A stretch of 32,000 nt of DNA from Wallemia ichthyophaga EXF-994 (Eukaryota > Fungi > Basidiomycota), in assembly GCF_000400465.1 (NCBI RefSeq), contig NW_008806277.1:390001-422000 (forward strand), read 5' to 3'. The notes under the pieces were generated by a model, which searched no databases, was not told the origin of the DNA, and saw only the letters and a list, made by a program, of their open reading frames with translations. Shown here piece after piece: positions 23 to 24,150 of this stretch. The first letter of the stretch is position 1; each line of letters opens with the position of its first letter. The position numbers were made by a program, and so were the translations under genes.

Positions 23-943
23 TCAACTAATACAATTATGATATAAAGAGACAATTTGCTCGTCTGGTAATTTGACAATTTCGACCTTCTCCTTTTTTGC
101 AAGGAGTTTGAGGTTGTAAACCAATTTGCTCTCGTTGTCGGGTAGGAAGAGAGGATGTCTGCTGTCAGGGAATAGAGTGATCCAATCATCGTTGTTGAAG
201 TTGAATTGCTTGAGGTATATTGATACGAGCGAGTTTGGCTTGAGTTTGAAGCCGAACATGGGCTCTTTGCCTTTAGATTCGCGTATTTTGATGGAATCGA
301 TGCTGTCAAAGTCTATGATGCGCGCAACGTGCAGTGTCGACGACGTTGGTTCTACGAGGAGAACAAGAGCGTCTTGTTTGTATAGAAGGTGCATATTGCG
401 ATTTGTAGCACCTTCTAAGGAAGACTTTCCAAAGAATGACTTGTATAAGGGGATAATATGCTCTGAGAGATAAATCTTGTCTAGATTGGTCTTTACGGAG
501 AACTCCTGCCAGTGTTTAGAGATGATAGGGTTCTTTATAAGTGTGAGGTGGCTGTTTTGCGTTGTTTTCTGGGTTATTGAAGCACTTGTCGGTGTTGTAG
601 TTACAGGGTAAGATTTGGGTGCTGTTGATGGACCTTCACGTGCCATTTCATCGGCCATTTCAGCCGCGATTTCAGGATCCCTCCACTTCCTCTTTCTACC
701 AGGATTCCTAGAATTCCAAGGATTCCAACTAACATCCGAATTCATTCCATTAACGGTAACAGACGTGTTCACTTGGTCATTAGAAACCAAATTAATTCGC
801 GGCTTAAACTTATTTATGATCTCATCATCCGTGTTCTCGTCACTTAGATTAAAATTTAAAGGCAATTGAATTAATTTATTCTTCGTCTTGTTATCACTAG
901 TCGTATACTGAACTTCAACTTGAATTTCTATTGATCGTGCCAT
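23..943 (-). CDS. Hypothetical 306-aa protein: basic NLS-like PGRKRKW, S/T linker, C-terminal globular domain (putative PH-like) shared with the 13612-15821 gene and the Ulp2-like gene
   Basis: Intact ATG(943)-TGA ORF, no clear intron, non-overlapping slot downstream of RNR2. Motif blocks LLYKQDAL / IDFDSIDSI / MFGFKLKPNS resemble blocks in two other genes here. No family recognised. Confidence 0.7.
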   Translation of the reverse strand: MARSIEIQVEVQYTTSDNKTKNKLIQLPLNFNLSDENTDDEIINKFKPRINLVSNDQVNTSVTVNGMNSDVSWNPWNSRNPGRKRKWRDPEIAAEMADEMAREGPSTAPKSYPVTTTPTSASITQKTTQNSHLTLIKNPIISKHWQEFSVKTNLDKIYLSEHIIPLYKSFFGKSSLEGATNRNMHLLYKQDALVLLVEPTSSTLHVARIIDFDSIDSIKIRESKGKEPMFGFKLKPNSLVSIYLKQFNFNNDDWITLFPDSRHPLFLPDNESKLVYNLKLLAKKEKVEIVKLPDEQIVSLYHNCIS

Positions 944-1030
944 TCTTCACTCTCAAGGTACTTGAAAGACAAAAGAAATCATCATAAATAAAATACAATT
1001 GTGAATATTTTCACGTGGTCATTCTAAAAT

Positions 1031-2298
1031 CTAGAAGTCTGCGTCGAGCGTAAACTCCTTACCTTTACCTGCTGTTTCGTCCGCTTTAACACCTGCCTTT
1101 GCATAATCTGACACTCTCTTCTCAAAGAAGTTGGTCTTGCCTTGAAGTGAGATCATTTCCATAAAGTCGAATGGGTTTGTTGAGTTGTAGTACTTGTCAT
1201 TACCCAATGACACCAACAGCCTATCAGCGCAGAACTCGATATACTGACACATTAACTTTGCGTTCATACCTATCAGCGCTACAGGGAGGGCATCTGATAA
1301 GAACTCCTGCTCAATTCCAACTGCTTCAACGATGATCTTCTCGACGACCTTTGGATGTGGTCGACGGTTGAGATGTCCAAAGAGCAAGCAAGCGAATTCC
1401 TGAGAGTGTTTGTTAGATGTGAGTGTTTAAAGTTGATAAAACTCACAGTATGCAAGCCTTCATCACGTGATATTAACTCATTCGAGAATGTCAATCCTGG
1501 CATCAAACCTCTCTTTTTTAACCAGAAAATGGATGCAAAGGAGCCACTAAAGAAAATTCCTTCAACAGCAGCAAATGCAATTAACCTTTCACCAAATGTA
1601 GCTTTATCGTCATTAATCCACTTGACAGCCCAATCAGCTTTCCTTTTAATGCAAGGGATTGTTTCAATTGCGTTGAACAAGAAATCACGTTGTTCAGGTT
1701 CAGGTATGTAAGTATCGATCAGGAGTGAGTAGGTTTCACTGTGAATGTTTTCCATCATGATTTGGAAACCATAGAAACATCTTGCTTCAGCGAGTTGAAC
1801 TTCACCGGAAAATCTTTCAAGTAAATTTTCATTTACGATGCCATCAGAGGCAGCGAAGAAAGCAAGAACATGACTAATGAAGTGCTTTTCGTCTTTGTTG
1901 ATCTTGTTTGTCCAGTCAGTGATGTCTTTGGATAAGTCCATTTCCTCTGCAGTCCAGAAGGAAGCCTCAGCCTTCTTATAGAATTGCCAGATTTCAGTGT
2001 ATTGGATTGGGAAAAGAACGAATCTTCTTGGGTTTTCCTTGAGAAGAGGTTCGTCTTCTTCTTTGCAGTTGACGTCGCCGACAAAGTATTTGCCACGGAG
2101 TTCTTCAGCCGAGAGGTTGTCTAGGTTGAGGTTGTTAGCGTCGATTGGTGTGTCTGTGGCGGTGTTTGTGGGTGTTTCAGCGTGATTCTTGTTGGATTGT
2201 TCACCAAAAGAGGGTTTTTTAGGATTAGACACGTTCAGCTTTGAATCCATTTGGTTTGATAGTGTGTGGATTGGCTGGTTTTGATCTACGCTTGACAT
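1031..2298 (-). CDS. RNR2: Ribonucleoside-diphosphate reductase small subunit (R2), 2 exons
   Basis: R2 motifs [41 protein letters not shown]-terminal KTNFFEKRV...FTLDADF. Intron 1400-1446 (47 nt, GTGAGT..CTAAC..CAG) joins EGLHT to [10 protein letters not shown]. Alternative in-frame ATG at 2337. Confidence 0.97.
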
Positions 2299-2345
2299 TT
2301 CCTTATTATTTTGGTGATGGAAGTACACGTCTAACATGTAACAAG

Positions 2346-2358
2346 TCGCGCGACGCGT
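2346..2358. promoter_or_regulatory. MCB (MluI cell-cycle box) ACGCGT with abutting TCGCGCGA palindrome upstream of RNR2
   Basis: TCGCGCGACGCGT lies 48-60 bp upstream of ATG 2298. RNR genes are classic MBF/MCB targets in fungi. Confidence 0.6.
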
Positions 2359-2603
2359 GCTTATGTCAAATTAGATTCGATTATGTCACACTTCTTTGTA
2401 ATCTATTGTAATTTAATTGCCTGACTTGGTAACCTACACATACTAAATCCAGCTATCTCTTCTGTTATCGGATTTGAATTTTCAGACTCCGATAAGATTT
2501 TATAGGGGCTTATTTAAATTTAAATTTGTAGTAGTCTACACTTGAAATTTTGTACTCTGTTTCCATGTAATTGCTTCTATCTGCTCGTTAAGCGTAGCCA
2601 CCA

Positions 2604-3389
2604 ATGAGTGACCTTGAAATATCCAAAGAGGGCCATGATACACCTGAGAACACTAAAAATAAGACTGGAATGATCTATATCTCTAGAATTCCTCCTGGAA
2701 TGACTCCTTCCAAAGTTAGGGCTATTATGGCTCAGCATGGTGAATTGGGTAGAATTTACCTGGCACCTGCAGGTGGGTTCGGATTAAAAGCCCTATCCAC
2801 AGCTCACACGTATGTCAGCCAATTCACACCCAAAGAACCCGCGCTTTAAAGAAGGCTGGGTTGAGTTTAAGAAGCGTAGAGTAGCCAGAAAGGTTGCACA
2901 GCTACTCAACGCCCAGCCAATTGGTGGCAAGAAAGGTGATCGTTATAGGGATGATATCTGGACGATGAAATTTTTAGGTGGTTTCAAATGGGAGATGTTG
3001 AGTGAGCATATTGGTGGGTTTTTGTTTGTGCGGTGTGCTATATACTGATACGCCCATCAGCCATCGAACAGGCCTCTCATTCGGCTAAACTGCGCAATGA
3101 ATTGTCTCAATCGAAGCGCGAGCAGGAGGATTATCTGAAGCGCGTCGACCGCGCAAAGAAGCAGTCAGCCATCGATGAACGTCGCTCTGCTAAAAATCTT
3201 CCTCCGAAGACTTCCGACAAGCACTACGAATTCAAACAGCGCCAAGTTGTGTCGCGTCACCCCTCCGAGCAAGCATCACAAGAATCAAATGCTAATGTTA
3301 ATGCAAAGCGGAAGCGCGCGGGATATGATCCCGCAGTGGAACAGCATAAGGCTAAAAAGTTAGAAACCGTACTAGGCAATTTATTTTAA
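2604..3389 (+). CDS. ESF2: Pre-rRNA-processing protein ESF2/ABT1 family, 3 exons
   Basis: Motifs [42 protein letters not shown]. Introns 2773-2818 (46 nt) and 3014-3060 (47 nt) join the three ORF fragments in frame. Confidence 0.93.
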
Positions 3390-3547
3390 TTTATGATGCA
3401 ATTTTTCACTAGCCTCGGCGAACATGGCGACTCTTCCTAGACATGCTAAATTGACATTCCGAATCGAGCAACGGTTAATATAAACTGTTGGTAAAGGATG
3501 AGGAAAGTTACTTACATACGATTACCATCACTGGCTGACGACATCCG

Positions 3548-5401
3548 ATGGATAACAGCAAACTAGCCTCCACCAGTTCCGAGGAGCCATTAACTATAGT
3601 GCCACCAGTTGCGCGGCGCTCGTTGATGGCCTCACCACAAGCCTCCATGTCAGCATCCGTGAGCGAGAAGTACATGTCATTCCCCGACGAGCCTTACCTC
3701 TTTGAGCGGGTGGCAGAGGAGGATGACGATGACAACGCGGATGATGACCTCCACCGCCCCGACGAGTACGTTAAAGCAACTGACAGAGTGGCTTCCGGCA
3801 GGCTATGTACTCGACGTGGAATACTCAATGTCGGTATGCTCGTTCTGCTCACAGCTGCGCTCTTGATGCTTTTCGCCGGATACCCTATATTGGATTATGC
3901 GCGAGAAGTGCAACGCACAACGAACGGCGGGTACAATCTAGGCTTCATCAACTCTACAGGCCAGACGGCGGTTATTGGAGGGATGCACACGCGCGGGCTG
4001 GTGGATCCCGATACGCCCGCTTCTGCGCGTCATCGCGTAGGTTACGACGGACAGGAGTAGTAAGTGGGCACATTGTTGCGTCTACACACACACTCACACA
4101 CTCCACCCCACAGCGAGCTGGTGTTCTCGGACGAATTCAACGAGGACGGCCGTACATTTTACCCGGGTGAAGACCCCTACTGGGAAGCAGCCGACCTGCA
4201 CTACTGGGGAACGAACAACCTGGAGTGGTATTCGCCGCGCCAAGTGAGCACATCTGGCGGGGCGCTGCACCTAACGCTGGACGAGGTGGAGAGTCATGAC
4301 CTCAATTACGAGGGAGGACTACTGACAAGCTGGAACAAGATGTGTTTCACGGGCGGGTATGTATCTGCATCAGTGAAGCTGCCGGGCGCTTCGGATGTGT
4401 GGGGGCTGTGGCCAGCGTTCTGGACAATGGGCAACCTCGGTCGAGCGGGTTATGGAGCGAGTCTCGATGGGCTCTGGCCGTATAGCTACGACAGCTGCGA
4501 CGTTGGCACACTGCAGAACCAGACACTCGGCACATACCCGCCCGCTGCAGCCACACAAGGTGACGAGTACCACGACTACAAGCTCTCCTTCCTCCCCGGA
4601 CAGCGTCTATCGCGGTGCACATGCACAGGTGAGGACCACCCCGGACCTTTGCTTGCAGATGGCACGTTCAAAGGTCGTGCTGCACCCGAGATCGATATCC
4701 TTGAGGCACAAGTTAGCGAGGCGACTGAAACCGGCCAGCTCTCTATGTCGGGCCAATTCGCACCATTTAATAGCAACTATCGCTACAACAACACAGGCGA
4801 CAACGTGCACCTCACTCATCCCGACAGAGACATACCCAACTCGTACTTTGGCGCAGTCTTCCAGCAGTCGGTCAGTGGCGTTGTGGAGTCGGACCAGGAA
4901 TGCTACCAGTTAGGCGCAGATGGGGGATGTTTCGACGAGTACGGGTTTGAATACACGCCTGGACCGGCTGGCGACATCAAGTGGTCTGTCGGCGGCGAGG
5001 TGCGGTGGACGATGGAAGCGGCGGCCGTGGGTCCAGACGCCACGACGGATATCAGCCAGCGCACTATCTCGGAAGAACCCATGTACATGCTGCTGAACCA
5101 GGGCATATCGGAGAATTTCGGCAACATTGACTGGGAAGAACTAATCTTCCCGTCGGTTATGTCAGTCGATTGGGTGAGAGTGTACCAGCCAGCTGGGAAG
5201 CGTAATGTGGGGTGCGATCCGGTGGAGATGCCCACCGCCAGTTATATCGCACGCCATCTGGACGCCTACAGCAACCCGAACCTCACAACCTGGGAGCAGT
5301 ACGGGGGTGAATGGCCTCTCAACGCCCTCGAGCACCAGGATGAGCAGAGGTGCGAGACCGCTCTAAATCTCGCACCCGATAACCTCATCGGGCTTGTTTA
5401 A
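3548..5401 (+). CDS. KRE6: KRE6/SKN1-like GH16 beta-1,6-glucan synthesis-associated type II membrane protein, 2 exons
   Basis: N-terminal TM segment (ILNVGMLVLLTAALLMLFAGYP), LVFSDEF, WPAFWTMGNLGRAGY, GH16 catalytic motif APEIDILE. Intron 4060-4113 (54 nt, GTAAGT..CAG) gives GYDGQEYELVFSDEF. Confidence 0.93.
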
Positions 5402-5613
5402 TCGCTTTGTTTTGTTTTGTTTCTCTTTCGCAGCACCAGTAGCTTTACCTGTATACGTCTTAATATAATATGGATATCACATTGTTTCTTTTTACACAGT
5501 AGCGAATGCATGTCGTTATGTACAAAGAACGTAAAATGAGAGAGAGGAAGCGTAGAAGAGGCGCGAGAAGGGGCCAGCCAGCGACCCAAGCATTCAGCGC
5601 AACCGACGCAACA

Positions 5614-7356
5614 TTACCAGCCGAAAGTCTCACAATGTTGAGACAGACCACCGATTTCCTTGAGATACCTCGGATCGATACCGCCGATGGCAGCTCTGCA
5701 CGATCTGACCGTGGAGGGAGGACCACAAATACCGACGACCATGCCATACGTGCAGTGTCTATCTTTAGCCATAAAGACAGCATCTTCGATTATAGCGGCG
5801 ATAGAGGGTCTCTTGGCGAGAATCTCTCCGTCTCTATGGGGGAGGAGGTAAGTGAGGTCATCGCTCGATACGCCGGCGGCGTTACCGTGGCGAGTGATGA
5901 AGACCTTAACGGTGAGGTCGAGCGGAACGAGGGAGGCAGCGACGAGGAGCGTCATAAGTTCCTCGTGGAAGACTTGATACGTAGCGACATCCCTGACTAT
6001 CCAAATGACCTGGCAAGTAGTAGCACGTGCGTGACCGCCTCTGCTCTGCTTAACGAGGTCTTCCGCACACGCAAGCACGAACGCGAGACCTGATCCCGCC
6101 GCCACAAAGAGCACATGGCCGTTCTTCCCGAAAGACGTATAGAGCGGACCACCGTAAGGGCCCTCGACGGTAACTGCAGCGGTGGGGACGCTGTCGTGAC
6201 CTGCTTTCTCAGGCCCTACCTCGTGCGTCCCGTATGTGATTTCGTTCTGCTTGCGCTGCGCTAGTGCCAGCACGCGGCTGCTCCAGTCGCCATTGCTGCG
6301 TATGATCAAACGCAGCCCGTCACTGCCACCTATCGCACTTGCTATGGAGATCGGGTGCTTCTCTATCAAATTACCCAATCCAAACAACTTGCCGCCTAGC
6401 TCCTGAACGCGCAGGTAGACGTGCTGACCTGCTTCCCAGCCACCGCGCAAGTCGGGGATTGTTATCGTTGTGTAGCCGGCTGCCGGGTGGGGAGTAATCT
6501 CCGCGAGACGAGAACGGGATCTGCAGAAACGCATAATGCAGTCAACGCCGTAGAAGACGATGCAAGGGATAATGAATGGCTGCGTCTGCTTCCAGTGGAT
6601 CATGATGGCGATGAGGTAGATCCAGTAGCCGAGCCAGTGGGAGTGCCAGAAGAGGTTGTAGAAGTTGGTGCGACACCAGGGGACAGACAGAACGGCGGTG
6701 AGTAGAAGACCGACCATGGCGAGAATGCCAGATTGGTAGAGGGGCGTTTTGAGAGTGGCTGCGGTAGAACCATTTAGAGTGCTCTTGTGGGCGTAGCCGG
6801 CCGTGTGGAGGAGAGCAAACAAGACGCAAAGCCTACCTAATAGCCTGTGGAGCTTGTTGAGCTTCTCGTATCCCCAGCCGCCCATAGTGCCGACAATGGA
6901 ATTCTTGAAAGAGAGGGCGGTGACAGCGGGTGTTACAGCGACAGCAGCCCAGCCAGCTCTGTTGGGTTCTTTGATGGGGTTCGTTGGGCCATACGCAAAG
7001 ACAAAGAGAGACGCAGCCGTGGCGAGCGCAAAGACAAAGGCCTGGCCAGCAGTGAGGGATATGCCTGGAAGGGGAGTGTTGGCTGTGGGTGCCAGCCACA
7101 CAGTGAAACGCTTGAATACGTTGGGTTTTGCGCTCTGGCCTTTGTTGAATGGGGATTTGGTGATGACAGAGAAAGGGTACGCGCCCGGGCCATCAATCTC
7201 ACCCTTGTGGAGGAAGGTGGCACGCTGGATACCGCGGGCCATCACCCAGTTCACCATCGACGGCAGTCTGGCTATGAACGCCACGCCTAACATTCCACCG
7301 AAGAATGCCTGCAAATAAATTGCTTGTTCATGCGATTGACTGATTGGGTGACTCAT
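5614..7356 (-). CDS. Ferric/cupric reductase (FRE/NOX superfamily), intronless, ~580 aa
   Basis: Two H-x13-H heme-ligand helices (HRLLGRLCVLFALLH; HWLGYWIYLIAIMIH), FAD-binding HPISIAS, VEGPYG, NADPH-binding AAGSGL, terminal ETFGW. First plausible ATG is 7356 (MSHPISQ). Confidence 0.9.
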   Translation of the reverse strand: MSHPISQSHEQAIYLQAFFGGMLGVAFIARLPSMVNWVMARGIQRATFLHKGEIDGPGAYPFSVITKSPFNKGQSAKPNVFKRFTVWLAPTANTPLPGISLTAGQAFVFALATAASLFVFAYGPTNPIKEPNRAGWAAVAVTPAVTALSFKNSIVGTMGGWGYEKLNKLHRLLGRLCVLFALLHTAGYAHKSTLNGSTAATLKTPLYQSGILAMVGLLLTAVLSVPWCRTNFYNLFWHSHWLGYWIYLIAIMIHWKQTQPFIIPCIVFYGVDCIMRFCRSRSRLAEITPHPAAGYTTITIPDLRGGWEAGQHVYLRVQELGGKLFGLGNLIEKHPISIASAIGGSDGLRLIIRSNGDWSSRVLALAQRKQNEITYGTHEVGPEKAGHDSVPTAAVTVEGPYGGPLYTSFGKNGHVLFVAAGSGLAFVLACAEDLVKQSRGGHARATTCQVIWIVRDVATYQVFHEELMTLLVAASLVPLDLTVKVFITRHGNAAGVSSDDLTYLLPHRDGEILAKRPSIAAIIEDAVFMAKDRHCTYGMVVGICGPPSTVRSCRAAIGGIDPRYLKEIGGLSQHCETFGW

Positions 7357-7534
7357 GTCTTTTATTTGTCTTGGTTGTTTGTGTTTGACTTTCTTTGCGA
7401 CCGGCGCCTTCTTTGGTATGTAAAAGCCTTCAACGTATCGCCTCGACAAGCCCGCGGACAAAGTCTGGAACGTACGTGTGATGATGTCATTATGCAAATA
7501 AAATATGAAAGTTTTACTAAAATTTTTATCTAAC

Positions 7535-9537
7535 TTAATCTGAATCGCTTGAGTCGTTGTCTTGGTTTTCATTATCACTCTCTTCACTCTCACTCTCACT
7601 ACCACTCTCTTCCTTTTTCACCGACTGCCCACGAAGCTGTGCCATCTGTCCCGCCAATGTGTCTTCCTCAGGCTCGCTAATATCATCCTCCTCCTTCTCC
7701 TTAGCCGCACCCTTCTCTACCACCAGCCTCATTGTCCTCGCTGCCTGGAATCCCCACCCTGGCTGCACTTCGGAGCAAACGACTGCCCTGAATGTGTAAA
7801 CTCCCGGCTGAGGTGGCGCTTGGAATTGCAGGTTGAGACTCTTTGCCACATTCTTAAATTTGGGAGTCTGAACCACGGGTATATTCGTGAAGCGACCCGG
7901 CTGCACGATGATCCTCCCCGTCTTGGCATCTGTCAGCATAGCGAGGTAGGTGATAGGGCGTTCATGCGGGAAGCGTGGTGTGTACGCGGCGTGTAATCTA
8001 CTATCCTTTACCTCCTCCAACACGTCGCTCTCGGGCTTGCTACCGTCGTCGCCGAGTGGGAAACGCGCAGGCACGAGACGCACCTTGGTCTTGAACTGCA
8101 CTATCGCACCTGGTGTTACTGTCTCTTCGTCGACGACTGTGAGGTATGTGTTAGCTTGCTTTGGTTTCTTCACGTTACACTAATATCTGAAAGTGCATCT
8201 TTGACTCCAAACTCACCTTCAAAACTGGCATCAGCGATGTCTACGTGGAGTAGCCTACCGAGAACCTCATTGACACCGTGATAGTCCTCTTGGCGCACAC
8301 CATCCTTCTCGCCCACTCGGAGCAACTGTCTACGTTCGTTTTCCGACGCTCTGGCGACGGTGAAGGGGGCTTTCTCTGCAAGTTCCTCAGCCAATGATTC
8401 CGGTATATTGTAGATACCCTTATACACGCTATCGCCGGGTTTAGTTGCTGTGAGGAGGTGGCCTGAGAGCTGGGCCATTTTGAGTGTGGTTGGAAGCCAA
8501 TTATGAGCGAGTGAGATAGCCAGTAACGTCCTGTGCACATGCAAAGCCACCGGGAGAATAGCGCGTTGCTGAGACTGCAGTTTTCTTGGCAATTCGATAC
8601 GCAGCACATGCGCAAACAGCAGGACAGCCGCGCGAACTGATTGTGGGCGTGCATATATACCTGTCGCTGGGAAGACATAGTCAAGCTGCTCTTTCGCAGT
8701 CCCCTTGACCATCTTGGCGGTATGCTTGTCGATGGGGGTGGAGGGCAGCACACCAACCATCTCGTCTGCCGTAGCGAGAAGATGGAGGAGGTCGGAAAAG
8801 TCAGCGTTTTCATCAACCTTGCGGAAGAATATGGCTGCGGTGGAGTTCTGCACGCGGTCTTTGGTCAGCGAGCGGCTGGCGAACCACCACTTGCCGACGA
8901 AATAGGGCAGACCGAGACCGAAGAGAATGCCATAGACACCGAGCACCCAGAGCGAGTTCTGTGAGTCGACGACCCACGTCGGGATAGCCACGCCCATAGC
9001 CACCTCCTGCTTGCCGTCGGGATGGCCAAACTGCTCGAGATTCTGCTTGACGACATCGTCAGTGAGCGCCTTGTAAGCCTTTGTGAGGCTGACAAAGTAG
9101 TTGTCAGCGTCCTCCGACGTCTGGTTGACAGCGAGTTTGACTTTGTCTGGGTGGAATTGCAGTGACAGCCTCTTGTAGTGCTTCCTGATCTGTTTCTGGG
9201 TGGACCCAGAGGCTAGACCAAGTATTTCAAATGGGTCATACACACTAAACTCCAACTTGATGTCCCTGGTCTTGATGGTTATGTAGGCGAACGCAGCCCA
9301 GCCCACAGCAAGCACAGCAAGACGCGTCCACGTAGCTTTTGGCTGTTTGGAAGACTTGGGCTTTGGGTGCTGCGCTGGATACGGGAAGGCTGGGAGGTGT
9401 AGGCCACCGGGAGAAGTGCTCTCGCGGAAAAAGCCATAGAGCGTGGATACAGACAGCGGGAACAGAATCAGGAATAGAAACGTGAGCGTGAAGTAGCCTG
9501 CGAATTGGCCACTCTCGTCGTATTGCGTGCCGGTCAT
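7535..9537 (-). CDS. SEC63: ER translocon subunit Sec63 (TM segments, J-domain, Sec63/Brl domain, acidic tail), 2 exons
   Basis: N-terminal QYDESG..YF, J-domain YDPFEILG...FHPDK, QFGHPDGKQE, acidic C-terminus DDISEPEEDTLAGQMA. Intron 8137-8216 (80 nt, GTGAGT..GCTAAC..CAG) gives ASFEVVDEETVTPG. Confidence 0.95.
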
Positions 9538-9877
9538 CTGCCGTCTGCCTCGTCTTGGTGGTTGAGTGGAAAGTGATGAGCTGTGATTTGAAGGTGTCAA
9601 TAAATTCTAATTTTTGGAGATGTGCAGTGAGTGGTGTGTGCTGAGTATGAATATAATATTCATCTCTTGATAAGACGGTTCGTTGGATTACATGATTAAA
9701 TTGGTTAAATACCACCCAAATACGGTGTGGAGTGTGCTGTGTGTGTGTGGTGATATAGCCTGTATAAATAAACACAAACAAATACAAATATAATTAAAAA
9801 TATTCAAACAGTCATCCCCACTCACACTAAATATCAGCACACTTGGACCCAAACCACAACGACGACGACGAATTAAA

Positions 9878-12197: not shown

Positions 12198-12463
12198 TAA
12201 GCCAATTAAATTACTTGAATCAATAGCCATAGCCAACTGGCTGTATAAAAAACGACCAATAGAATCCTTAACGTATATAATATAGTACACACACAACGCA
12301 AGCATATCATCACTGCATCAATCATTTACCTAAACAATAAAGAGAAATAAAAGAAATCTGCTCTTCACTCAAATGCTAAATCAAAGTAACGCTTTAATAT
12401 AATTCCACCAGTAATTGTAATAATAGCTCTCATTTCACATCTGCATAATAGCCGTCGCTCCTC

Positions 12464-13540
12464 ATGGCCGCACTAGCACTGCCGATAACTGCGCTCAGTG
12501 TGTTTCTGACGCGACAAGAACAACAGCGCGAGCAAGAGGGTGAGCGCAAGAAGCAAGATAGCGATGACTTTCTCACCAAGTACGGTATGCGGGGGGGAGG
12601 CGGTGGAGGAGGAGAAGGTACGACCGCCACACCCAACACGCCCACCATGCAGCACAAATCGCCCAGCGACGACTGCGATATACTAATGCTTGGCAGTGGC
12701 TGGATATCAAATTTCGCCGTGCCTGTGCTTGTCAGCAAGGGGTATACTCTGAGTGCGACGACGCGGCAACCGGTCCAAGGCGACACGTTTGAGAGGATAG
12801 CATTTGATTATGGAGGAGGTGATGGAGACGATGAATCAGACACGACGCTCGATGATCAGATTCGCGCTCTGCCCACAGCACGCACGGTCGTCATAGTGTT
12901 CCCGCTGCGCGGCGCTAAGCGGAGTGCGCGGCTAGTGGACAGCTACACGCGACTGAAGGGAGCTGCTCAATGGATCCAGTTAGGCAGCACTGGTATCTGG
13001 GGAAGTAGCGGCGTTGGCGAGACGGTGTGGATCGATCGCCATTCTCCTCCTACGCCCACCAACGAGCGTTTCATCGCTGAACAGGAACTCCTCTCCCTCT
13101 CAACGCCCTCCTCCCCGACTACCGTCCTCAACCTCGCCGGCCTCTATGGACAGGAACGCAAGCCGTCTAATTTTCTCAAGCGGTTGCAAGATAAACTCGA
13201 GATCAAGGGCAGTGTGCATTTCATTCATGGCGTTGACGCCGCTCGAGCTATTCTCCTCCTTCATCAACACTTCACTCCTGGTCAGAGGTGGCTGCTCACT
13301 GACGGACGCGTGCACGATTGGTGGGCTGTCGCTCTCGATAAAGCTGAACCAGGCAGTGTCGCACGCGCTAAAGTTAACGCTTTAACTAAACTTCTCGGCA
13401 TCAAGGCCTTACCTCGCCCTGTTGCTCATGTTGTCCCCGATGACGTCAATGACAGATCGAGGAAACTCGTTAGAGCGTTGGATAGCAGTCACTTCTGGCA
13501 CCATTTCGATGAAGCCCCTTTGAGTGGTACATTGTCCTAG
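12464..13540 (+). CDS. Atypical short-chain dehydrogenase/epimerase-like Rossmann protein (YeeZ-like) with N-terminal hydrophobic and poly-Gly extension, intronless
   Basis: ILMLGSGW Rossmann glycine motif, WIQLGSTGIW, VLNLAGLYG, HFIHGVDAARAI (IH..D.A.A as in extended SDRs). Confidence 0.7.
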   Translation: MAALALPITALSVFLTRQEQQREQEGERKKQDSDDFLTKYGMRGGGGGGGEGTTATPNTPTMQHKSPSDDCDILMLGSGWISNFAVPVLVSKGYTLSATTRQPVQGDTFERIAFDYGGGDGDDESDTTLDDQIRALPTARTVVIVFPLRGAKRSARLVDSYTRLKGAAQWIQLGSTGIWGSSGVGETVWIDRHSPPTPTNERFIAEQELLSLSTPSSPTTVLNLAGLYGQERKPSNFLKRLQDKLEIKGSVHFIHGVDAARAILLLHQHFTPGQRWLLTDGRVHDWWAVALDKAEPGSVARAKVNALTKLLGIKALPRPVAHVVPDDVNDRSRKLVRALDSSHFWHHFDEAPLSGTLS

Positions 13541-13611
13541 TCTATGAAATTAAATGTACTTTATAAGTTATTAGATACTACTGCTACTGCATCATACCTA
13601 TGTAAAAGTCT

Positions 13612-15821
13612 TCACTTGGTTCTTGGCCTTCCACGACCGTTCAGCTTCGAATTGGCGGTGACTGTTCCTCTTTCAGCTGCGTCAGCACACAAACTACCCA
13701 CTAACCTTGTATTGTATACAGGAACACCGTTTCTTTCAGCACAATCAAATACATGGTCTATAAAGTCGTCAAACGCTTGAAAGTTGAACTTTCTATTGCT
13801 CTTTATCCGCAACGCAAGCGCATCGTGACTACTTCTGAGTGGTGTCTTACCATCGCATTCGTTGATATACTCCACCACACTGCTATTTAGTTTCAAGTGA
13901 AACGCCAACACCGTATCCTCTGAGCGATCACTTGTGTAACTTGAAGTAGCTATACTCTTAACCACAGTAATCGGTATCATCCACACAGCCTGCGTCACTC
14001 CATTCACCCTCCCATACACAACAAAACAATCGTCTTCAAATCCTAAATATGCTGGCCAGCCGGGAACGCATAGTCCACAGTATATGTGATCATCAAATAC
14101 CGGAAATAACCTCCCTTTATGTAGGAGATGTTCGAGGTAGTAGTCCTGCGCGGGTCTTAGACGCTTACGGAATAGCGGCGCATAGTCAATAAACGATGGC
14201 TTTTGTAGTAGTTTATTGAGCGCTTTTCTCTTTCGTGCTTCTGGCATATATCTTGTCTGTAGATCCATGTCACTTGCTATTTTGTCTGTATTGTTGGTGG
14301 TGCTGCTTGTAGTGTCAGTAGTGTTAGTCATGTTAGTAGTAGCTTCTTCAGTAGTATTCGCTGAGTCAGTAGCTGCGTTTTTCGGAGCAACTCCTTTCTC
14401 AGTAGTCTTGCTAGCCGTATCTTTGTTGTTGGTAGCTGCATTGTTTGCGACCGTGTTTGTGTTGTTGTTTGTTTTGCTATTTGCTTTTTTCTCATTTGCC
14501 TTGGGGCTTACGTTTCCATCAACACTACCGTTTTCGTTTCCATTTGTATCTGTATGATGTGTCTGAGGACGTAAAGTTTGGTCAGAGGCTGCTGGAGGCT
14601 GCTGAGCAGCTTTGGCTTGCTTTTGCTGTATTTCATCAGCTATTTTTGAGGTGCTGGCCGTGTTTACTGTCTTCGCAATGCTTGATGTGCCAGCTGTTTT
14701 GGCGGTGTTTGCCCTGCTTGACGCAGCAAACGTAGCTGCGTTCGACTGTTCCCTCTTAACAGCAACACTCTTTGCGTGTTCAGACATCTCCAAAGCACGC
14801 TGCTGCAGTTGATCTGCGCTAGGTTTGTGCTCCTCTTCATCCAATACCATACTGTCACCATCCAAAACCTGTCTCACCCTGCGCTCTTCGTCTTCAGAAT
14901 GATTCGAAGCTCTTCTCTTGCGAATTTGATCCGACTTGCTCAATTCTTCATGATGCTGCTCATGTGGCTGGTTGACTTCTTGTGTTGGTAATCTCCTAGC
15001 TGAAGCTACAGGAGCTGCGGCTGGTTCCGGTTGTGGAGATATGGATCCCCAGTACGGCTCAGCGGTTGGATCTGGAGCTTTTGATACATTGCGAATGGGT
15101 TGGCGAGCTGGTTGCGTTGATTGCCAGTGCAGTACAGGTTGCTGCACCTGCTGCACTTGCTCAACTTGCTCAAAACCTTTAACTGGTTGCGTAATTCCTG
15201 CTACAAAGTTGCTATCATTGACGTTGTTGCTATCGAAATTGCTGTACTCGTTGGTCTCGTGATATTCTCCCATTGCAGATTGATCAAGCTGATTATCTTC
15301 CATGGGAACTTCAGCCCTATCGTAAATAACGCCATATTGCTGCTCGGGCTGCTCTCTTTGCTCCACGTGCCCAACGCCCTCCACTGGCCCGTACTGCTCC
15401 TCGGGGTAATCAAATTGACTCGGAGGGTACGCGTCCTGATATGGTTGAGGCTCCTGCTGCGAGTATCCAGACAAATCTATGTTGATATAGTATGTACAGT
15501 TTATCGTGACTCCGTTGCTACTGCTGCTACTGCTGTTTGCTGGGCGAGACGGTTGCATCCCACGAGGGAGCCTCAATGAGAGAGAAATGTCGTGATCGTC
15601 TGAGTTCGTTACCACTGTTTGCATTCCTTGAATTAGTCTTTCGGCTATCGGCGATGGAAGTTACAAACAAGACGAAACACGCAGGAACACCAACTCTCCA
15701 GTATTTCTAATTCAAATGTAGGTTTCTCATAGGAAGCATTGTTGTCTCGAGCTTTCCGCAGTGCGCGGCTATAGTTTAATGACTCTTCTCCGATATCGCC
15801 CAATTGTGTCATAATCAGCAT
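13612..15821 (-). CDS. Hypothetical, probably nuclear protein: long Q/T/N low-complexity region, C-terminal putative PH-like domain, terminal AT-hook-like RGRPR; 5' end uncertain
   Basis: 670-aa ORF 13612-15624. A stop-free 135-nt exon (15695-15829) joins it in frame via a 50-nt intron 15645-15694 (GTTGGT..TAG), giving an ATG at 15821. Further upstream exons are possible (see findings). Confidence 0.7.
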
Positions 15822-16391
15822 CGGAATACCTGCACAAGATGAGAAATATAAATTACAAATATTATTCCGTCTACTGTTTCTGCTTCGATAAGCCTTGTGA
15901 TTCTGGTTTTTTTTTTAATAATCGAGTCTGTGTATGTTAGCTCACGTGCCTTACAGACTAAATACTCACGAAGCTTCTTGCCTGGGTATGTTCTATCGCT
16001 GTACTGCGTGGTGAAAGTTTCTGTAGTAAATAGTCTACGCGCTTTTGGTAAAAATTTCATGTTGTGGCTTGACGAATAAAATGGCAGTATCATCTTCATG
16101 AGTGTGCGCGTTTAGCTACTTTGTTGTTTGTTTTATTACCTGTGACCCAAGGTGTAGTGCGAATTGATTTCGCGAGATTTCGTGGAAAGAGTCATAAGCT
16201 GCCTCATACCCATGGCTGCTCCATGTATTGTATCTATGAATGTTTGGTATCACATGAAAAAGAAACAAGATTAACAATTATATAGACGTGAATTATACAG
16301 ATCTTATTTATACAGGTCTTCCTTTGCGCGTAAATTATCTGCCTAATATGAGGCATATTAAAAAAGTAGGGAACTGCGAAATCTCCAGTTT

Positions 16392-18424
16392 TTAAGCTGA
16401 TGAGCCTTCCCCTGGCTTGACTTCCTCATCAAAGACGTAAAGCTCCTCCTTTGGTAATTTCCGACCGAATAAGTACCGGTTGATGAACCACGGAATCTGT
16501 CTGAATTGGTAAGCGATGTGGACGCGAGTAGGGGTGCTGAAGACTGCAGAAACCTTAGAATGACTATATGAAACACGGCTCAACTCACCTTGGTCCAACT
16601 CTTCTAGCGTCAAGCTCTTTGTTTCAGGAACGAATAAAAAGGCGAGACAGAAGAGAGCAGCGCACCATGCGGCGTACCATCCAAATGCACCTGAAGAAGT
16701 AAATGCTTCTTGAAGCGCTGGGAAGGTAATCGAGAGGATGAAGTTGAAGAGCCATAGAATCGCCGTCGCCAGACTCATCCCGAGATTACGATGTGACAGC
16801 GGGAATACTTCAGCGCTGTATGTAAATGGAACAGGTCCTGAGGTGTAACTGTACTGAACCGTAAAGAGATATACTCCAATCGCGACTGGAATGATTTGTT
16901 TGTCGAATGGAGCCAGGAATCCTAAGGCGACGACCAAAAGCATAGCGCACATGGTAGGATAACCAATCAAAAGCAATGCTCGACGTCCATATCTGTCAAT
17001 TGTAAAGAATCCCGGGATTGCAAAGAGGAAGTTGATCATACCGAATCCCCAAGATGCTAAGAGTGCATTCAATTCACTGAATCCAGCTCTAACAAAAATG
17101 TTAGAGCTATAATAAGCACATACATTAATACCGCAGAACTGTCGATCCCGGTTAGTTTGGACCATGTGCTCCTGGTAGAAAATTTGCACTTACTTGTTGA
17201 CCAAACATGACGATGGCGGAAGCTGCGGTAGCTCTACGGTTTCTTGGAATGGTAAAGAGCTCTAAAAATCTGAACCACGCTGACTTCCCTTGAATCATTT
17301 TCATTTCTTCGGTCATGCAGATGTGAATGTAGTAGATGTCACGCGCAGCTTGAAGATCGCTCGGACGTAAGCGCTTCAAGGCTCTTAAAGCCTTAGGATA
17401 ATTTTTCTTGCCTTTGCCCATCAGATAACGTGGTGATTCTGGGATGAATGGTATGACGCCCATAACGACTAATGCTGGAATACCAGCGCTACCAAGCATT
17501 AATCTCCAGTTTAAACCATCGATGTTAGCTGTGTCTTTGACGTGGTAGAAGATTAAATCAGCGACAAATCTATGATTTAGATGTTAGCTTTAGTTAGTAT
17601 GAATATTTGCATCATACCCTACTATGATTGAAATCTTAGCTTATTGTTGTTTTTGATGTAAAACACTTACACATAATACCGAAAGCTGTCCAAAATTGCC
17701 ACATCATAACGAGTGCACCTCTAATGTTGGCTGGGGTTGTTTCAGCAGCAAAAACCGGAACTGTTGCGCTCTTTGGACCGATACCTAATCCTAGCACAAG
17801 TCTGGAAACAAAGAGATGTTGCCAGGAATTTGTAACGGCTGACCAAATGCAGGTTGCGAACGACAGGAAGGCAGTGATCATGATAGTACCACGTCTCCCA
17901 AAAAATCTGTTAAGAGGGCTAGTAAGCCAGCAGCCAAGAACTGCACATGCTAGGTATGGCGCTGAATTAACCAAACCAAACAGCCAGACATCGACATCGG
18001 GGTTGATATTCAAATCCTGTGGATAGAAGAGTTGTGCACCATTTATGACTGTTTCATCCATGCCCTGAACGACAGCACCAACACTGCAACAGGCTACTAG
18101 CAGCCAAAGCTCACGTGTCTGATGTAATTTGTGTGTTGACTCCCTTCGGAAAGCCTCTTTGTCGTCGTCGGTGAGCTGAGATAGCATCTCTAATCTTTTT
18201 GGATCTTGCGCAACCAAAGCACCCTTTGCAATTTTTTCAGCATCATCCCCAAGCCCATACTCGTGCGCAAAAGCGGTTGCATCCTCATAAAGCTTATCGT
18301 GTGGGATGCCCTTGAGAGGATTTTCGAGCTTCTGGGTCAATGTCTTGGGTGGAGGAGCCCTTTGTTCGGGTAGAGAGTCATGGGAGATTTCAGGCTCAAG
18401 TTTGTGATCTATTTTCTTTTCCAT
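16392..18424 (-). CDS. MFS sugar-porter family transporter (polyol/myo-inositol-like), 5 exons including a 4-nt micro-exon
   Basis: Sugar-porter motifs QGMDET, NRFFGRRG, PVFAAET.P..IRG, PESPR, QQFCGIN, IDRYGRR, PETKSLTLEELD. Introns 17622-17670, 17570-17617, 17139-17193, 16544-16588. Substrate is not determinable from sequence. Confidence 0.92.
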
Positions 18425-18605
18425 GTAGTAAATTAAAATTAAAGAAGGGTATAAGGCGTTTGAGGCTATTTAAGTTACCAGATGATGTTTAAGTCATGGG
18501 ACCTAAATTGAATCTCAGATCGGAGGAACTGGCCGCGGCAGTCTAGATTGGCGTTCATCGGCATTCTAGCGCCTTCCGAATTTGGTTAAAGCGTAAATTA
18601 CAGAA

Positions 18606-18635
18606 TAATAATGAGCTAATAATGATTTAATAATG
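18606..18635. repeat. Three direct copies of TAATAATG at 11-bp period upstream of the MFS transporter
   Basis: Copies start at 18606, 18617 and 18628. Confidence 0.75.
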
Positions 18636-18859
18636 CCGAAATTGAGGCGGATGACTCCTCGGGGCGATCTATAAGATATCGTGACAAAAATGTAATCAAA
18701 GGTATCATGTCACGCTGGAAGGGATGCAAGACTGTGCATTCATAGATTCATGAACAAGATAAATAGTGTGGCTTGATTAGGAGAGAGCACTGGAAATCAC
18801 AGGTAGAGAGAATCCTTGTAAAGGTAAATGTCCAAGCTGATTGGCTGATATAACACGGC

Positions 18860-19309
18860 TTATTTCGCTGGTGATTGAGATTTGCTGCTGAACGCGCCAG
18901 TTGCCCAATCGTTGGAGTTTTGAACGTCTGGACCGGCAAGAGATCCACGATGGGGGCCGTTGCTGGTAACTTTAGGTTCACCAACCTAAAATATCTCAAT
19001 GGGATGAATATAGCGAGATTTCCCACGTACCTCTGAAACATCTGGATCAGCACCTTGGTCTTCCTCAATCGCAGCGTTTGCTTCAGCGCCTTCAATCGGA
19101 ACGCCCTGAGAAGTACGCAGCTGGGAATTACGCCTTGGCCTCTGAGAAGACTCTCCAGAAGGGATATCAGCCTTAGATTGGTTCAGCGTAGACTCCCTGC
19201 GCTGCTTTGGTGCGTTATCATCTGGAGGAGGGCTAACTTCTTCATCATCAGAATCGAATGGATTTCTAAATTTTGTTTCTTGTGCGTTGGCTGAGTTTGA
19301 TTTGATCAT
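18860..19309 (-). CDS. Small (~134 aa) hydrophilic, probably disordered hypothetical protein, 2 exons
   Basis: ATG 19309. Intron 18986-19030 (45 nt, GTACGT..TAG) removes the in-frame TAG and continues VGEPKVTSNG...SPAK to TAA at 18860-18862. No recognisable domain. Confidence 0.6.
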
Positions 19310-19340
19310 ATCTTTTGACAGTTGTAATCAACCTTTGTGC

Positions 19341-19364
19341 ACGACGACAACGACGACGACGACG
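19341..19364 (+). repeat. (ACG)n trinucleotide tract in the 83-bp divergent spacer between the small gene and the Ulp2-like gene
   Basis: ACG ACG ACA ACG ACG ACG ACG ACG. Confidence 0.8.
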
Positions 19365-19392
19365 GCAGCGTTAAAATAGATTTTAAGCTTAA

Positions 19393-22300
19393 ATGGGTTC
19401 AGAGGATCCAGCGTGCGTCGCTTTCCTAGGGCTACAATCCACGCTTACCAATACCCAGTCGCAGATCAGAGAGAGGTAAACCACCCATCCATAAGCAGCG
19501 CGTGAGTCGTTGTCGTTTGAATACCTGTAAACGCTCTCATACTTTTCCCAGGAATTCAAACTCGGCCTTGGGCGCGATACGCTCAGCATCGGTAGCAACA
19601 ACCACAACCCAAATAGACGGCCTGTGAAAAGCTGTGAGATAAATCGTTAGCAGTAGCGTATATTTCTCATTCCCCACACAGCTCCTGTCCAGCCAGCTCA
19701 AACTTCGGCTTTCTACAGTTCCACCCCACCCGCCGCGAGACAGCTGCAAAGTGATGCTGCCCATTCTTCCAAATCTGGTCCAATAGACATTGAAAGTGAC
19801 AACGGTGGCTTACCCACTCCTTCCACCTCCAATAGAGTAAAAGGTAAACAAAGGGATCATAGCTATGCTCAGTTATCTGCACAGTGGTCTAAACCCGTTC
19901 AGGACGCTCAAATTGACTTAGACTCTGATGATATTCCCATATCCAAAAGCGCTACTGGCGTGGCTGCAAATATGGCTGGGAAGGGTACACAGAAGAAACC
20001 CTTGATATCGTCGCGTAAGTCGCAGTCTAAACCATCGCAAGCTTCCCGAAAAGAGCCTTTGGATGTTGAACGAGGTAAACATATTAATCACGACAACAAC
20101 AATCTTTATACCACCAAAAAAGTCAGTGAAACCCTTCGCCATGGTTACCTGCATTACATCAATCTCAAGGGCTCCAATTCAAATAATGTCCTATATCTAG
20201 CTCAGACGAAGATCAACGGATATAACGTCGAAAAGTCAACTCATGGCTTGTATGCCTTGTATTTCGATGACGCCACATTATCGCTCTGTAGACGAGTACC
20301 ATCGCAAAAATTGATACCATGGCGGGTGATTGACCTCCAGGACTTGTATTCTGTCCAAGCTCGCAGCGAAGATATGTGCAGCGTGTTCTTCTTTGTACTC
20401 AAGGAAGATTCACCGACAATAAAGTCCCTTAAGGACCCTAAAAGCGAGTTAGCACTGGAGCATACAGTTGACGACAAAGAACTTACACTCTCAAACCACT
20501 TGAAATCGGCAAACAATACCATTACTTTTGTCACCGATCCAAATGCCCTCATCAATAGCAAAGATAAACACCGAAAACTTATTGGAAGTATAGAAAAAAC
20601 AATGAAAGAAGGCATACGAGAGATGCCTACTCCTCAATTTCAGCAATTCGTGAAATCCATCAATGAGAATGGCAGGGCTTCTGCCGACACAACCAAGTTT
20701 CCCGCTGATACAAGTAAGAGTAGGCCTCGGCAGAGCAGTGCAAATGAGACTATCACTATTGATGAAGAAGACAAATCCAATGCTAAATATGATGATGGTA
20801 CGCCAAAGGCCACTAAGCAAAAAAGAAAATCTTCAGCCAAAGGTCAAAATGACGAGATTGAGTTATTTTCTGAAGATGAAAGGGAGCAAGTCAAGAAAAA
20901 ACCTAAACCATCCGCAATTCCTAACATGGCGAAAGATAAACCCCCTCCTAAAGCAATCGTACCAGGTCAAGCCAGAGCACAAAGTCAATCAACACCTAAG
21001 ACTGAAGAAAACGATGAGTACACCTCTCGAAGGAGTATTAAAAACATCCCAATACCCCGCACGAACTCCACACGCAAAGCTAAAACTGATGCTAATAAGG
21101 CCAACAATGATGCGAAAACTTTAGCTTGGTGAGTGGTTCTGAGCATTTTAGATAGTCTCTGACAATACCCTTCTATACCAGCCACAAGCCTCAGATGGAT
21201 TCAGCAATTGCCAATGAGATTTATTTGATAAAGGAGTTTGAAAATGGCTGCCTAACAATACGGAGAGGCGATCGAGCCAGCATTGACCCTTCCGAATTCC
21301 TTAACGACTGTATAGTTGAGTATGGAATACGCTCAACGCTTATGAGGCTGCGAAATCGTGATCCGCTTTTAGCTGATCAGGTGCATCTTTTCAGCAGTTT
21401 TTTCTACTCATCTCTAGTAAATTCGTACGAAGGGTTGGGAGATCCCTACAAAACCATGTGGAGGTGGACGAAAGGTGTTGATATCTTTGCTAAAAAGTTT
21501 ATCTTGGTGCCAATATGTGAAAAGTGAGTGAATGTCACCTCCATTACCTACGCAGCTAACGAAGGCAGCTTGCACTGGTATTTGGCAATCATATACAACC
21601 CCAAAGGTGTGCTATACGGACCACCAGGAGACGCCAAGGATAAAAAGAAACAACCCAAACCGCGGTCGGCGACTGGAGCTGCTGGTGCGGCCGTCAATTC
21701 TGCTGCTGCAAAGAAGAAAGAGACTCAGAAGCGGAGAGAAGCGGCTAAATTAGATAAGAAAGCTGAAGCTGCCAAGCAGAAGAAGAATTATGATATCGTA
21801 GAACTCAGCTCTGATTCAGAAGAGGAGCCAGAGCGTCAGAGCCAAGAGAAGGACTTAAAAGATGAAAAGGATGGTAGCAAAGCAAGTTCCAGCGCAACAG
21901 GCAACTCACCTGAAGTCGATAAAGATGAAGACGTTGTTATGGCAGAAGCTCCTTTGTTCACACAAGGTTAGTGAATTTCACAGAAATTTCAAAGCTAATG
22001 TACAATACTCAGCTGAGCATACCGAGGCTTCTTCACAGCCAGATATACCAGACTCCAGTGCAGTGGAAGTTGTGGGTAGCGCAGATGGGGAATCAAGCAA
22101 AGTTGAAGGAGACGTGGACGTTGTGCACGAGATGCGTAGTAAAAATGCGCGCTGCTATATATACACACTCGACAGCTTGAGTGGAACGCACAGAGTTGTA
22201 ATAGACAACCTTTCCAGGTATCTCCAGATGGAAGCGCAGGGTCGGAAAGAGCTTCCCGAAGAAGAATTCAGTATGCCTGATGGTAAGACGCCGAAAGTAC

Positions 22301-24150
22301 CCAAACAGCCGAATTGGTGCGATTGTGGTGTCTACGTTATACACTACATTGATGTGTTTTTCAAGGATACGACTAAATACCTCAATTTGCTTTACAACTC
22401 ACATAGAATCAGACGCGAGCAGACTGATCCACAATGGGAGAACAAGGTTGCAACTAGTGCTCGCGAACGCCTGACCAAGGAGTTGGATGAAGAGGCTGCT
22501 ATATTTGACGCTGAGGAGATTCGCAAAGGAAGGCGGAAGCCCAAACCGATCGAAAAAAATAAGGAGAAAACTACTGAAACTGCTACTGTAACTCCAGCAA
22601 TTGGTGAAAATGATGGCGAGGATGCCGGTCAAAGTGATGATACAAATGACAAAGCTGTTAAATCTGGAAGTAATGAAAATTCGGATGAAGATAACAAGGA
22701 AATTGAAAGCAATCCATCTATTACTGCCACGACGGGTGAAAATGGTGAAGAAAGTACTAAAAATGAGAATGGATCTCACAAAGTTGAGCTACAAGCTAGC
22801 ACTAGCCAAGCAAAAGAGGAGGGTGTAATCAATATTTCAGATGAAAGGGACGGCTCCGCAGTAGCGCCTACAGATAAATCCTCAAGTCAGCCACCAGCTC
22901 ATTTATTAGGGGACTTGGGGGTTGTGATGGCATCCAATTTTATGGAAAGCTCAGGGCAGCATAGTGAGCAGCCTCACAGTGACTGTAGAAGGTCTCATGA
23001 TCTACGAGAGCCTCAGGTATCTCATAGATCCTCAGAGGCCCACGATGAAAGACAGCACACTTCTCACGATCATTCTCTGCGTTGTGCTCAGCAGATTCAA
23101 TCAGCGTCATCTTCGCAAACATCAAATCTATCTCTTCTTGCTCAACGAATAGAGTCAACCACGGCTTCGCCCGTCTCACCTACAATAATTACAAGTCTAC
23201 TACAGCGACTCAAGTCAAGCTCAACCTCACCAAAAAGAGAATCAAACTACTTCGATGCTCTTTCTGAGCGAATAGATGAGCACCGATCAGTGGATCCTGA
23301 ACGTATGCAGCAATTTCAGCAGTTGCAACAGTTTCAGAGAAATTTTGCTTCTATGCAAAGACCACAGGCTACCCCACCACCTCGCATTCCACACCCTTCA
23401 CAGGTTTCACAATCGTCTTTCCATGCAGCAAAGAAAGCGACTACAGAAATTGTTAATCGGAATATGGCACAGTCGCTTCAATCGCCAAATGATTCACAAC
23501 TAACTGAGACATTGATGCAAACGCAATCATCAGCTCAATCAGATGATACAGTATTTCCTAAAACTACCAGCAGTAAATCAATAAATTCCACAGCAGATCT
23601 ACCTTGTTTATCTGTCAAGCCAGACTCAACAGGAGTGATACCAAAGACAGATGTAAATAGTAATTTACCAAATGCCACGGAAATGCATCCGAGAGGGAAA
23701 AAAAGCAAGAAAGCAGCAGAAGAAAAACCAACTCGCAATGCTAAGATCAGGGATTTTCTTTCGAAACCTGCTGATGAAGAGAGAAGGGAGAAAACGATGT
23801 TTCAGCCACTAAGTTCTCACAGGCAGAACATGGGAATGAAGCCAAACAAAAATGACTATGATGAGTCTGCGAGTAAGCAGCATAGTAGAGAGCCAGGAGA
23901 TCCGCTTCCTACGTTTGCCATAGGCGCAAACCGAGCAAACCCAGAATATCCACAGTTCCAACGAAGTTCGGAAGATGAAAGGGATGAGAGAGACAGTCAG
24001 TTTGAAGGGCTCTCGATTATGGGCAGGAGTGGAACGATTGATTCTGGCCTTGATAGCCAATCACAGCCATCGCCTCGACCAGGGGAAATATCAGCGGCAA
24101 ACAACACACCGTTACCGTCACATCCAACGCTAGGATCGAGGCGGAGGTAA
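19393..24150 (+). CDS. ULP2: Ulp2/SENP6-7-like SUMO protease (peptidase C48), ~1489 aa, 7 exons
   Basis: Motifs FLND, HLFSSFFY, WTKGVDIF, VPICENLHWYLAII (His 21573), LDSL (Asp 22171), QPNWCDCG (Cys 22324). Introns 19413-19458, 19502-19551, 19634-19681, 21129-21181, 21524-21568, 21967-22012. Exon total 4470 nt, in frame. The first three exons are less certain than the catalytic region. Confidence 0.88.

Follow-up and report, generated by a model that had tools for sequence, protein, structure and literature searches.

Does a SUMO protease share an undescribed domain with protease-less genes encoded beside it? The question is raised by a 32,000-nucleotide stretch of the Wallemia ichthyophaga EXF-994 genome (contig NW_008806277.1, positions 390,001 to 422,000, forward strand; hereafter the window), in which the gene for an Ulp2/SENP6-7-type SUMO protease (19972-24150, + strand) is accompanied by two genes without a protease domain, gene A (23-943, − strand) and gene B (13612-15624, − strand). 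A first-pass annotation, made from the letters alone, had noticed the same ordered sequence blocks in the three translations and proposed a common PH-like domain. We consider it reasonably likely that the conserved C-terminal domain of gene A (domain A; amino acids 138-306, window 26-532, −), the conserved C-terminal domain of gene B (domain B; amino acids 471-653, 13666-14214, −), and a conserved N-terminal segment of Ulp2 (domain C; amino acids 45-234, 20104-20673, +) are copies of one lineage-restricted PH-like domain of about 125 to 150 residues. The ortholog of C is called C2; D and E are paralogs found on contig L003 of a sister species (Wallemia, Logan assembly SRR25399871). The protease-less genes A and B, together with D, E, and a relic in the window, are referred to as orphans.

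We found the blocks on which the proposal was built at their expected places in all three translations. Aligned in the order A, B, C, the first blocks read YKQDALVLL, FEDDCFVVY, and FDDATLSLC; the second read ARIIDFDSIDSIK, WMIPITVVKSI, and WRVIDLQDLYSV; and the third read MFGFKLKPNS, VLAFHLKLNS, and VFFFVLKEDS. These are followed by a further strand (WITLFPD, LALRIK, and TITFVTD) and then a helix. Between A and C, this part of the alignment forms a second colinear block with identical spacing (WITLFPDS...KLVYNL and TITFVTDP...KLIGSI). The proposed register was recovered by MAFFT in alignments of seven and of six sequences, by HMMER, and by hhalign, and by Smith–Waterman alignment for the pairs A-B and A-C. 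Insertions and deletions between the families sit in predicted loops.

Several searches and shuffle controls indicate that the resemblance carries information. Smith–Waterman scores were matched by shuffled sequences with p values of 0.007 (A-C), 0.04 (A-B), and 0.05 (B-C). Self-matches aside, the A profile and the C profile each have the other domain as best match among the 258 six-frame open reading frames (ORFs) of the window, and again among 607 ORFs drawn from the window and two related loci; when the C profile was run on locus L002 separately, the A ortholog was again its best match. Against 5000 composition-matched shuffles, hidden Markov model (HMM) scores for A-C gave p values of 4e-4 to 3e-3, and of 0.013-0.017 with C2. 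A pooled orphan profile compared with C by hhalign gave P=0.023, a score that 1% of column shuffles reached (p about 0.01-0.02). In leave-one-family-out searches of the 607 ORFs, a profile of A and C retrieved B at E=9e-5, and a profile of B and C retrieved A at E=3e-6 and 6e-4.

The contribution of the Ulp2 segment shows when it is added to a profile of another family. With real C included, the B profile scored A at 16.1, 10.7, and 24.7 bits instead of 1.4, −0.4, and 6.3 bits, and the A profile scored B at 20.2 and 7.8 bits instead of 6.8 and 2.8. When column-shuffled C was used in place of real C, these scores were reached 0, 0, 0, 0, and 1 times per 120. The gain over shuffled C indicates that C carries information common to A and B, as an intermediate homolog would.

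The same profiles found paralogs D (L003:4082-5035, −, 317 amino acids) and E (L003:5213-6358, −, 381 amino acids), which lie in tandem between the B ortholog and a sugar-transporter gene in the sister species. An HMM of D and E retrieved B at E=8e-5, and an HMM of B, D, and E had A as its top non-self match (E=0.012), a score reached by 0 of 5000 shuffles. B, D, and E have in common an N-terminal motif, [IFG]S[LF]SL[RN]LP ... I[NR]C..[YF][IV]NI, as well as a basic KRR-S patch and an acidic Ser-rich tract. The window has no intact D or E. Between gene B and the sugar-transporter gene, at the position matching the tandem copies of the sister species, it carries a decayed relic resembling the C-terminal part of E (15969-16166, −; tblastn E=7e-5, 33% identity over 69 amino acids, three in-frame stops). 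Together, D, E, the relic, and the shared architecture point to the orphans being a birth-and-death tandem family of their own. On sequence comparison, the homology of A and B, bridged by D and E, is well supported, and D, E, and the relic very probably belong with them. A sub-threshold Pfam match of paralog E to DUF4551 was judged to be noise.

Structure prediction for domain A responded strongly to the putative homologs. With an alignment of A rows only, AlphaFold gave an unusable model (predicted local distance difference test [pLDDT] 46.6, predicted template-modeling score [pTM] 0.42, five models spanning 34-47). With an alignment consisting of three A rows plus B, C, and C2, the B ortholog row from L003 being left out, all five models improved (54-80), and the best reached pLDDT 79.9 and pTM 0.77. 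The better model has strands at domain residues 26-34, 47-52, 55-60, 66-74, 78-84, 92-97, and 117-122. A short helix separates strand 6 from strand 7, and residues 131-147 form a long helix at the C-terminus. For gene A we thus find the seven strands and C-terminal helix of the PH-like superfold, with the PH-like core, from strand 1 to the C-terminal helix, spanning nucleotides ~92-457 (−). In a Foldseek search of the PDB, the leading matches of this model were nearly all PH-like; the best was the TBC1D23 PH domain (E=2e-3, probability 1.0, target TM-score 0.53), and others included CheF, Spt16M, CARMIL, SSRP1, Sin1, Rtt106, and the TFIIH p62/Tfb1 PH domain (target TM-score 0.58). The PH-like fold with a C-terminal helix that the first-pass annotation had foreseen is therefore borne out for A by prediction. 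For amino acids 471-653 of B and 45-234 of Ulp2, the alignment to A and their effect on the A model suggest a similar fold. The poor A-only model had only non-significant Foldseek matches. A lipocalin/CRABP-like barrel was matched by the poor model and was gone with the good one, and a SUMO-like beta-grasp fold was ruled out for A because the order of strands and helices does not fit.

Several results weigh against a domain shared by all three genes. The profiles are very shallow, with two or three close sequences per family and an effective number of sequences of about 1.3-2.7. Pairwise BLASTP was not significant (A-C E=27; B-C E=0.42; A-B E=0.04, in a different register), and neither was pairwise hhalign (P=0.061 for A-C, 0.19 for A-B, and 0.25 for B-C), for which the fractions of column shuffles reaching the score (0.064, 0.26, and 0.31, respectively) agree with the P values. 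The first-pass annotation had itself named such an outcome of profile–profile alignment against shuffles as speaking against its proposal; the profiles compared here held only two or three close orthologs. The evidence that the three-gene resemblance goes beyond chance is mixed: it fails by pairwise BLASTP and hhalign and is significant or suggestive by reciprocal best matches and shuffle-controlled profiles. That the resemblance is after all a coincidence of generic strand motifs in unrelated proteins, as the pairwise values would allow, seems to us very improbable in view of the leave-one-family-out matches to B and A, the bridging of B and A by D and E, the 33-point rise in the AlphaFold confidence of A upon addition of the putative homologs, and the shuffle controls of both the HMMs and the profiles with added C. 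A narrower alternative is that only the protease-less genes form a family, the Ulp2 N-terminus being unrelated or analogous and presenting a generic alternating hydrophobic pattern. It can draw on the profile of A and B, which found C only at E=0.42 among the 607 ORFs and showed no gain over A alone (8.5 versus 8.2 bits; other score, 4.4; shuffle p 0.11-0.15), and on C2, which orphan HMMs scored at 0.4-3.3 bits, its 3.3 bits comparing with 9.8 for C itself. Further, hhalign probabilities are 1-2%, and the AlphaFold gain, observed for A as the only domain modeled, might stem from B alone. This alternative leaves unexplained that C and A are reciprocal best matches in every ORF set tried, that real C lifts the mutual recognition of A and B by 5-18 bits where shuffled C does so in 0-1 of 120 trials, and that A and C have a second colinear block with identical spacing; we regard it as unlikely, though not negligible. 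The Ulp2 N-terminus, in our assessment, probably belongs to the orphan domain family.

If the three domains are related, the manner in which they came to be shared has also to be considered. The first-pass annotation had suggested that the orphans arose on the spot by partial duplication of Ulp2, with loss of the C48 domain and retention of the N-terminal module, and that they might now serve as decoys in the SUMO pathway. In favor of this history, no copy is more than 20 kb away from Ulp2, and both B (DSMVLDEEE, conserved as DSLLFDDEE) and Ulp2 contain acidic-flanked hydrophobic motifs resembling SUMO-interacting motifs (SIMs). We nonetheless find it improbable. Ulp2 carries the domain toward its N-terminus, whereas every orphan carries it at the C-terminus, and the orphans are encoded on the opposite strand. 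An N-terminal motif and a long linker, both missing from Ulp2, are common to B, D, and E as members of a tandem family of their own. No trace of C48 flanks the orphans, the sole C48 Pfam matches in the window being those of Ulp2 itself. Moreover, the paralogs are 14-25% identical, compared with 58-79% between orthologs, which implies copies of considerable age. We prefer the reading of one PH-like domain, present in an orphan family of its own and, probably, in Ulp2, whichever way any transfer between the two may have gone.

Gene A corresponds to the public W. ichthyophaga model E3P91_02376 (P0001), except for 24 residues that are spliced out in the public model. The 24-residue gap relative to the ORF corresponds to an in-frame intron of 72 nucleotides with GT...AG boundaries (GTAACT...AG; 533-604, −). 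The stretch matching this intron is translated in the models of W. hederae and of the Logan Wallemia species. Orthologs of gene A are found in these two species (Logan SRR25399871, P0002, 63% identity; W. hederae, P0003, 54%), and the C-terminal 169 residues that make up the domain are the best-conserved part of the protein, with 69-79% identity across the three species. The N-terminus of gene A reads LIQLPLNFNLSD ... KPRINLVSND (window 776-874) and is possibly akin to the N-terminal motif of B, D, and E.

Gene B is an intronless ORF of 670 amino acids. The first-pass annotation had placed its start at 15821; the start codon at 15624 and the first 20 residues that follow are kept in the sister species, so that the longer version is not supported. 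The ortholog (L003:769-2886, −, 705 amino acids) is 47% identical over the whole protein and 58% identical in the C-terminal domain, whose delimitation rests on this conservation, the HMM matches, and the shuffle controls. The N-terminal motif common to D and E reads ISLSLRLP ... INCTYYINI in gene B (15478-15588, −). Within the otherwise divergent linker, the block RKRRASNHSEDEERRVRQ (14830-14922, −) is identical in the sister species and is followed by the conserved SIM-like sequence given above, a hydrophobic triplet with an acidic run. Two smaller motifs that the first-pass annotation had pointed out fared less well. A resemblance between YLSEHII of gene A and YYLEHLL of gene B does not extend to the B ortholog, which reads RYVNNLL. 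Similarly, the AT-hook-like GRGRPRTK at the C-terminus of gene B (13615-13638, −) is GTGRLK in the ortholog, which extends beyond the stop position of B. Judged by a GRP core with basic flanks, gene A has a basic KRK patch only, and paralog E has two clear AT hooks (KR[IR]GRPPKKRTRS).

The Ulp2 gene was assembled by reading its splice sites. Three short canonical introns separate exons at 19972-21128, 21182-21523, 21569-21966, and 22013-24150 (+), and the spliced coding sequence is open for 1344 amino acids. Pfam Peptidase_C48 (PF02902) matches on two exons (1.4e-6 and 2.5e-11), and the closest PDB relatives are SENP7 (1e-24) and yeast Ulp2 (9e-22), the match falling into two stretches. Two introns and a long charged insertion interrupt the catalytic domain (21297-22377, +), and about 190 charged residues separate the segment bearing the catalytic His from that bearing the Asp. 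The spliced protein contains LHWYLAII (His), LDSLSG (Asp), and QPNWCDCG (Cys), with the His, Asp, Gln, and Cys of the family all in place. A large insertion within the catalytic domain is a hallmark of the Ulp2/SENP6/SENP7 subfamily; together with the C48 match and with SENP7 and yeast Ulp2 as nearest relatives, it shows that the label Ulp2-like is correct. Two SIM-like sequences were noted in the protein: ETITIDEEDK (20746-20775, +), past the N-terminal domain and reading ETILIDEDD in the ortholog, and NYDIVELSSDSEEE (21786-21827, +), within the catalytic-domain insertion.

An exhaustive phmmer search of 1.84 billion representative proteins with the Ulp2 N-terminus returned a sole relative, P0004 (68% identity), which represents the first exon of the Logan species' Ulp2 ortholog, so that no deep profile can be built for this segment. 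Two metagenome scans, one with the C alignment and one with the A alignment, gave no match. A word-indexed homolog search with the Ulp2 N-terminus and the B C-terminus also gave none and is uninformative, as the index missed the known L003 orthologs as well. The gene B ORF (13612-15624) and Ulp2 exon 1 (19972-21128) did not turn up in the public protein collections by word-indexed, exhaustive, or exact look-up, whereas gene A did; both may be missing from the public gene models of W. ichthyophaga or wrongly spliced in them. The sugar-transporter gene next to the relic (16284-18585, −) has two canonical GTAAGT...CTAAC...AG introns, at about 17141-17193 and 17570-17671. Its counterpart in the sister species is one uninterrupted ORF of 547 amino acids (L003:6855-8498), an intron presence/absence difference between close species.

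At a threshold of E<=10, Pfam assigned no family to any of the three domain segments, the full-protein scans giving C48 in Ulp2; comparison of the profiles with PDB sequences gave no relevant match, a spurious one to eS25 aside; and a survey of the literature on Ulp2 or SUMO proteases with PH, PH-like, or N-terminal domains found no relevant description. To our knowledge, the Ulp2/SENP6/SENP7 subfamily has not been described as having a folded PH-like domain at the N-terminus. The first-pass annotation was thus right not to recognize a described sequence family: by fold the domain is a member of the PH-like superfold, and by sequence it is an undescribed, lineage-restricted family, detectable in the W. 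ichthyophaga clade only.

These observations can be drawn together in a tentative model. A and B would be members of a small, fast-evolving Wallemia family that duplicates locally. The architecture of B, D, and E would comprise a short N-terminal strand motif, the basic KRR-S patch, a linker that is acidic and rich in Ser, and, at the C-terminus, a PH-like domain; gene A appears to have the basic patch and the C-terminal domain in common with them, the resemblance of its N-terminal motif being uncertain. As to function, we infer wholly by analogy that the PH-like domain may be a non-catalytic docking module, as in other nuclear PH-like domains. By engaging a peptide or a chromatin protein, such a module could steer Ulp2 toward certain substrates; the orphans, with their nuclear-type basic motifs, might act as adaptors or competitors by docking onto those partners or related ones. 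A role of the orphans as adaptors or decoys in the SUMO pathway is speculation. Bolder still, and in our estimate rather doubtful, is the idea that a young, rapidly duplicating, chromatin-type family and the essential SUMO-chain protease Ulp2 acquired a common docking domain when domains were shuffled within one locus, and that the orphans tune where Ulp2 acts by competing for the chromatin partner that Ulp2 binds or by forming a bridge to it.

The recruitment of Ulp2/SENP6-7 proteases to particular chromatin substrates is only partly understood, and in yeast short motifs are known to be needed for it. If true, an Ulp2 with a folded PH-like docking domain that its protease-less neighbors have as well would be a new solution to targeting. 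The locus would also exemplify lineage-specific domain birth, tandem duplication, and decay, and it holds a conserved domain that public annotation and Pfam overlook in at least three of its genes. The practical value is modest, as Wallemia is no genetic model and the family is visible so far in the W. ichthyophaga clade only.

Compared with known members of its subfamily, the Ulp2 of the window has, like Ulp2, SENP6, and SENP7, a long catalytic-domain insertion and extended disordered flanks containing SIM-like motifs, and it differs from them in its candidate PH-like N-terminal domain. For the domain as modeled in A, the closest parallels by fold among nuclear proteins are the TFIIH p62/Tfb1 PH domain, Spt16M, the SSRP1/Pob3 middle domain, and Rtt106, which have the same predicted fold as A (Foldseek probabilities 0.4-1.0, target TM-score to 0.58). 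The ligands of nuclear PH-like domains such as those of Tfb1/p62, the FACT middle domains, and Rtt106 are peptides or histones, not lipids, and the orphans are like the histone chaperones in that acidic Ser-rich tracts adjoin the domain. Unlike these nuclear domains, the Wallemia domain stands alone instead of forming a tandem double PH and has no sequence similarity to them, and A adds a helix between strands 6 and 7 as well as N- and C-terminal helices. The best structural match of A, the C-terminal PH domain of TBC1D23 (6jm5, 8qqf; E=2e-3, probability 1.0, target TM-score 0.53-0.54), is a peptide-motif-binding domain; identity is 14-18%, TBC1D23 is an unrelated cytoplasmic trafficking protein, and we claim no homology.

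A parallel in architecture is offered by the ubiquitin-specific proteases USP37, USP26, and USP29, in which an N-terminal PH domain (3u12) docks a protease for a ubiquitin-like modifier to its substrate complex. In USP37, the PH domain is both required and enough for binding CDC45 and MCM2 and docks this deubiquitinase to the replisome; the presence of a PH domain in LRR1, the opposing ligase receptor, as well suggests competition (PMC12084625). LRR1, a non-protease PH protein directed at the complex of USP37, would parallel the protease-less orphans beside Ulp2. The systems differ in protease clan (USP versus C48) and modifier (ubiquitin versus SUMO), and there is no sequence relationship between the USP37 and Wallemia domains; the USP37 PH structure was among the non-significant matches of the poor A model and is not among the top matches of the good one. 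Should the tuning of Ulp2 by its protease-less neighbors prove true, the Wallemia locus would be a natural paralog–decoy system for SUMO deconjugation, analogous to the PH pair of USP37 and LRR1.

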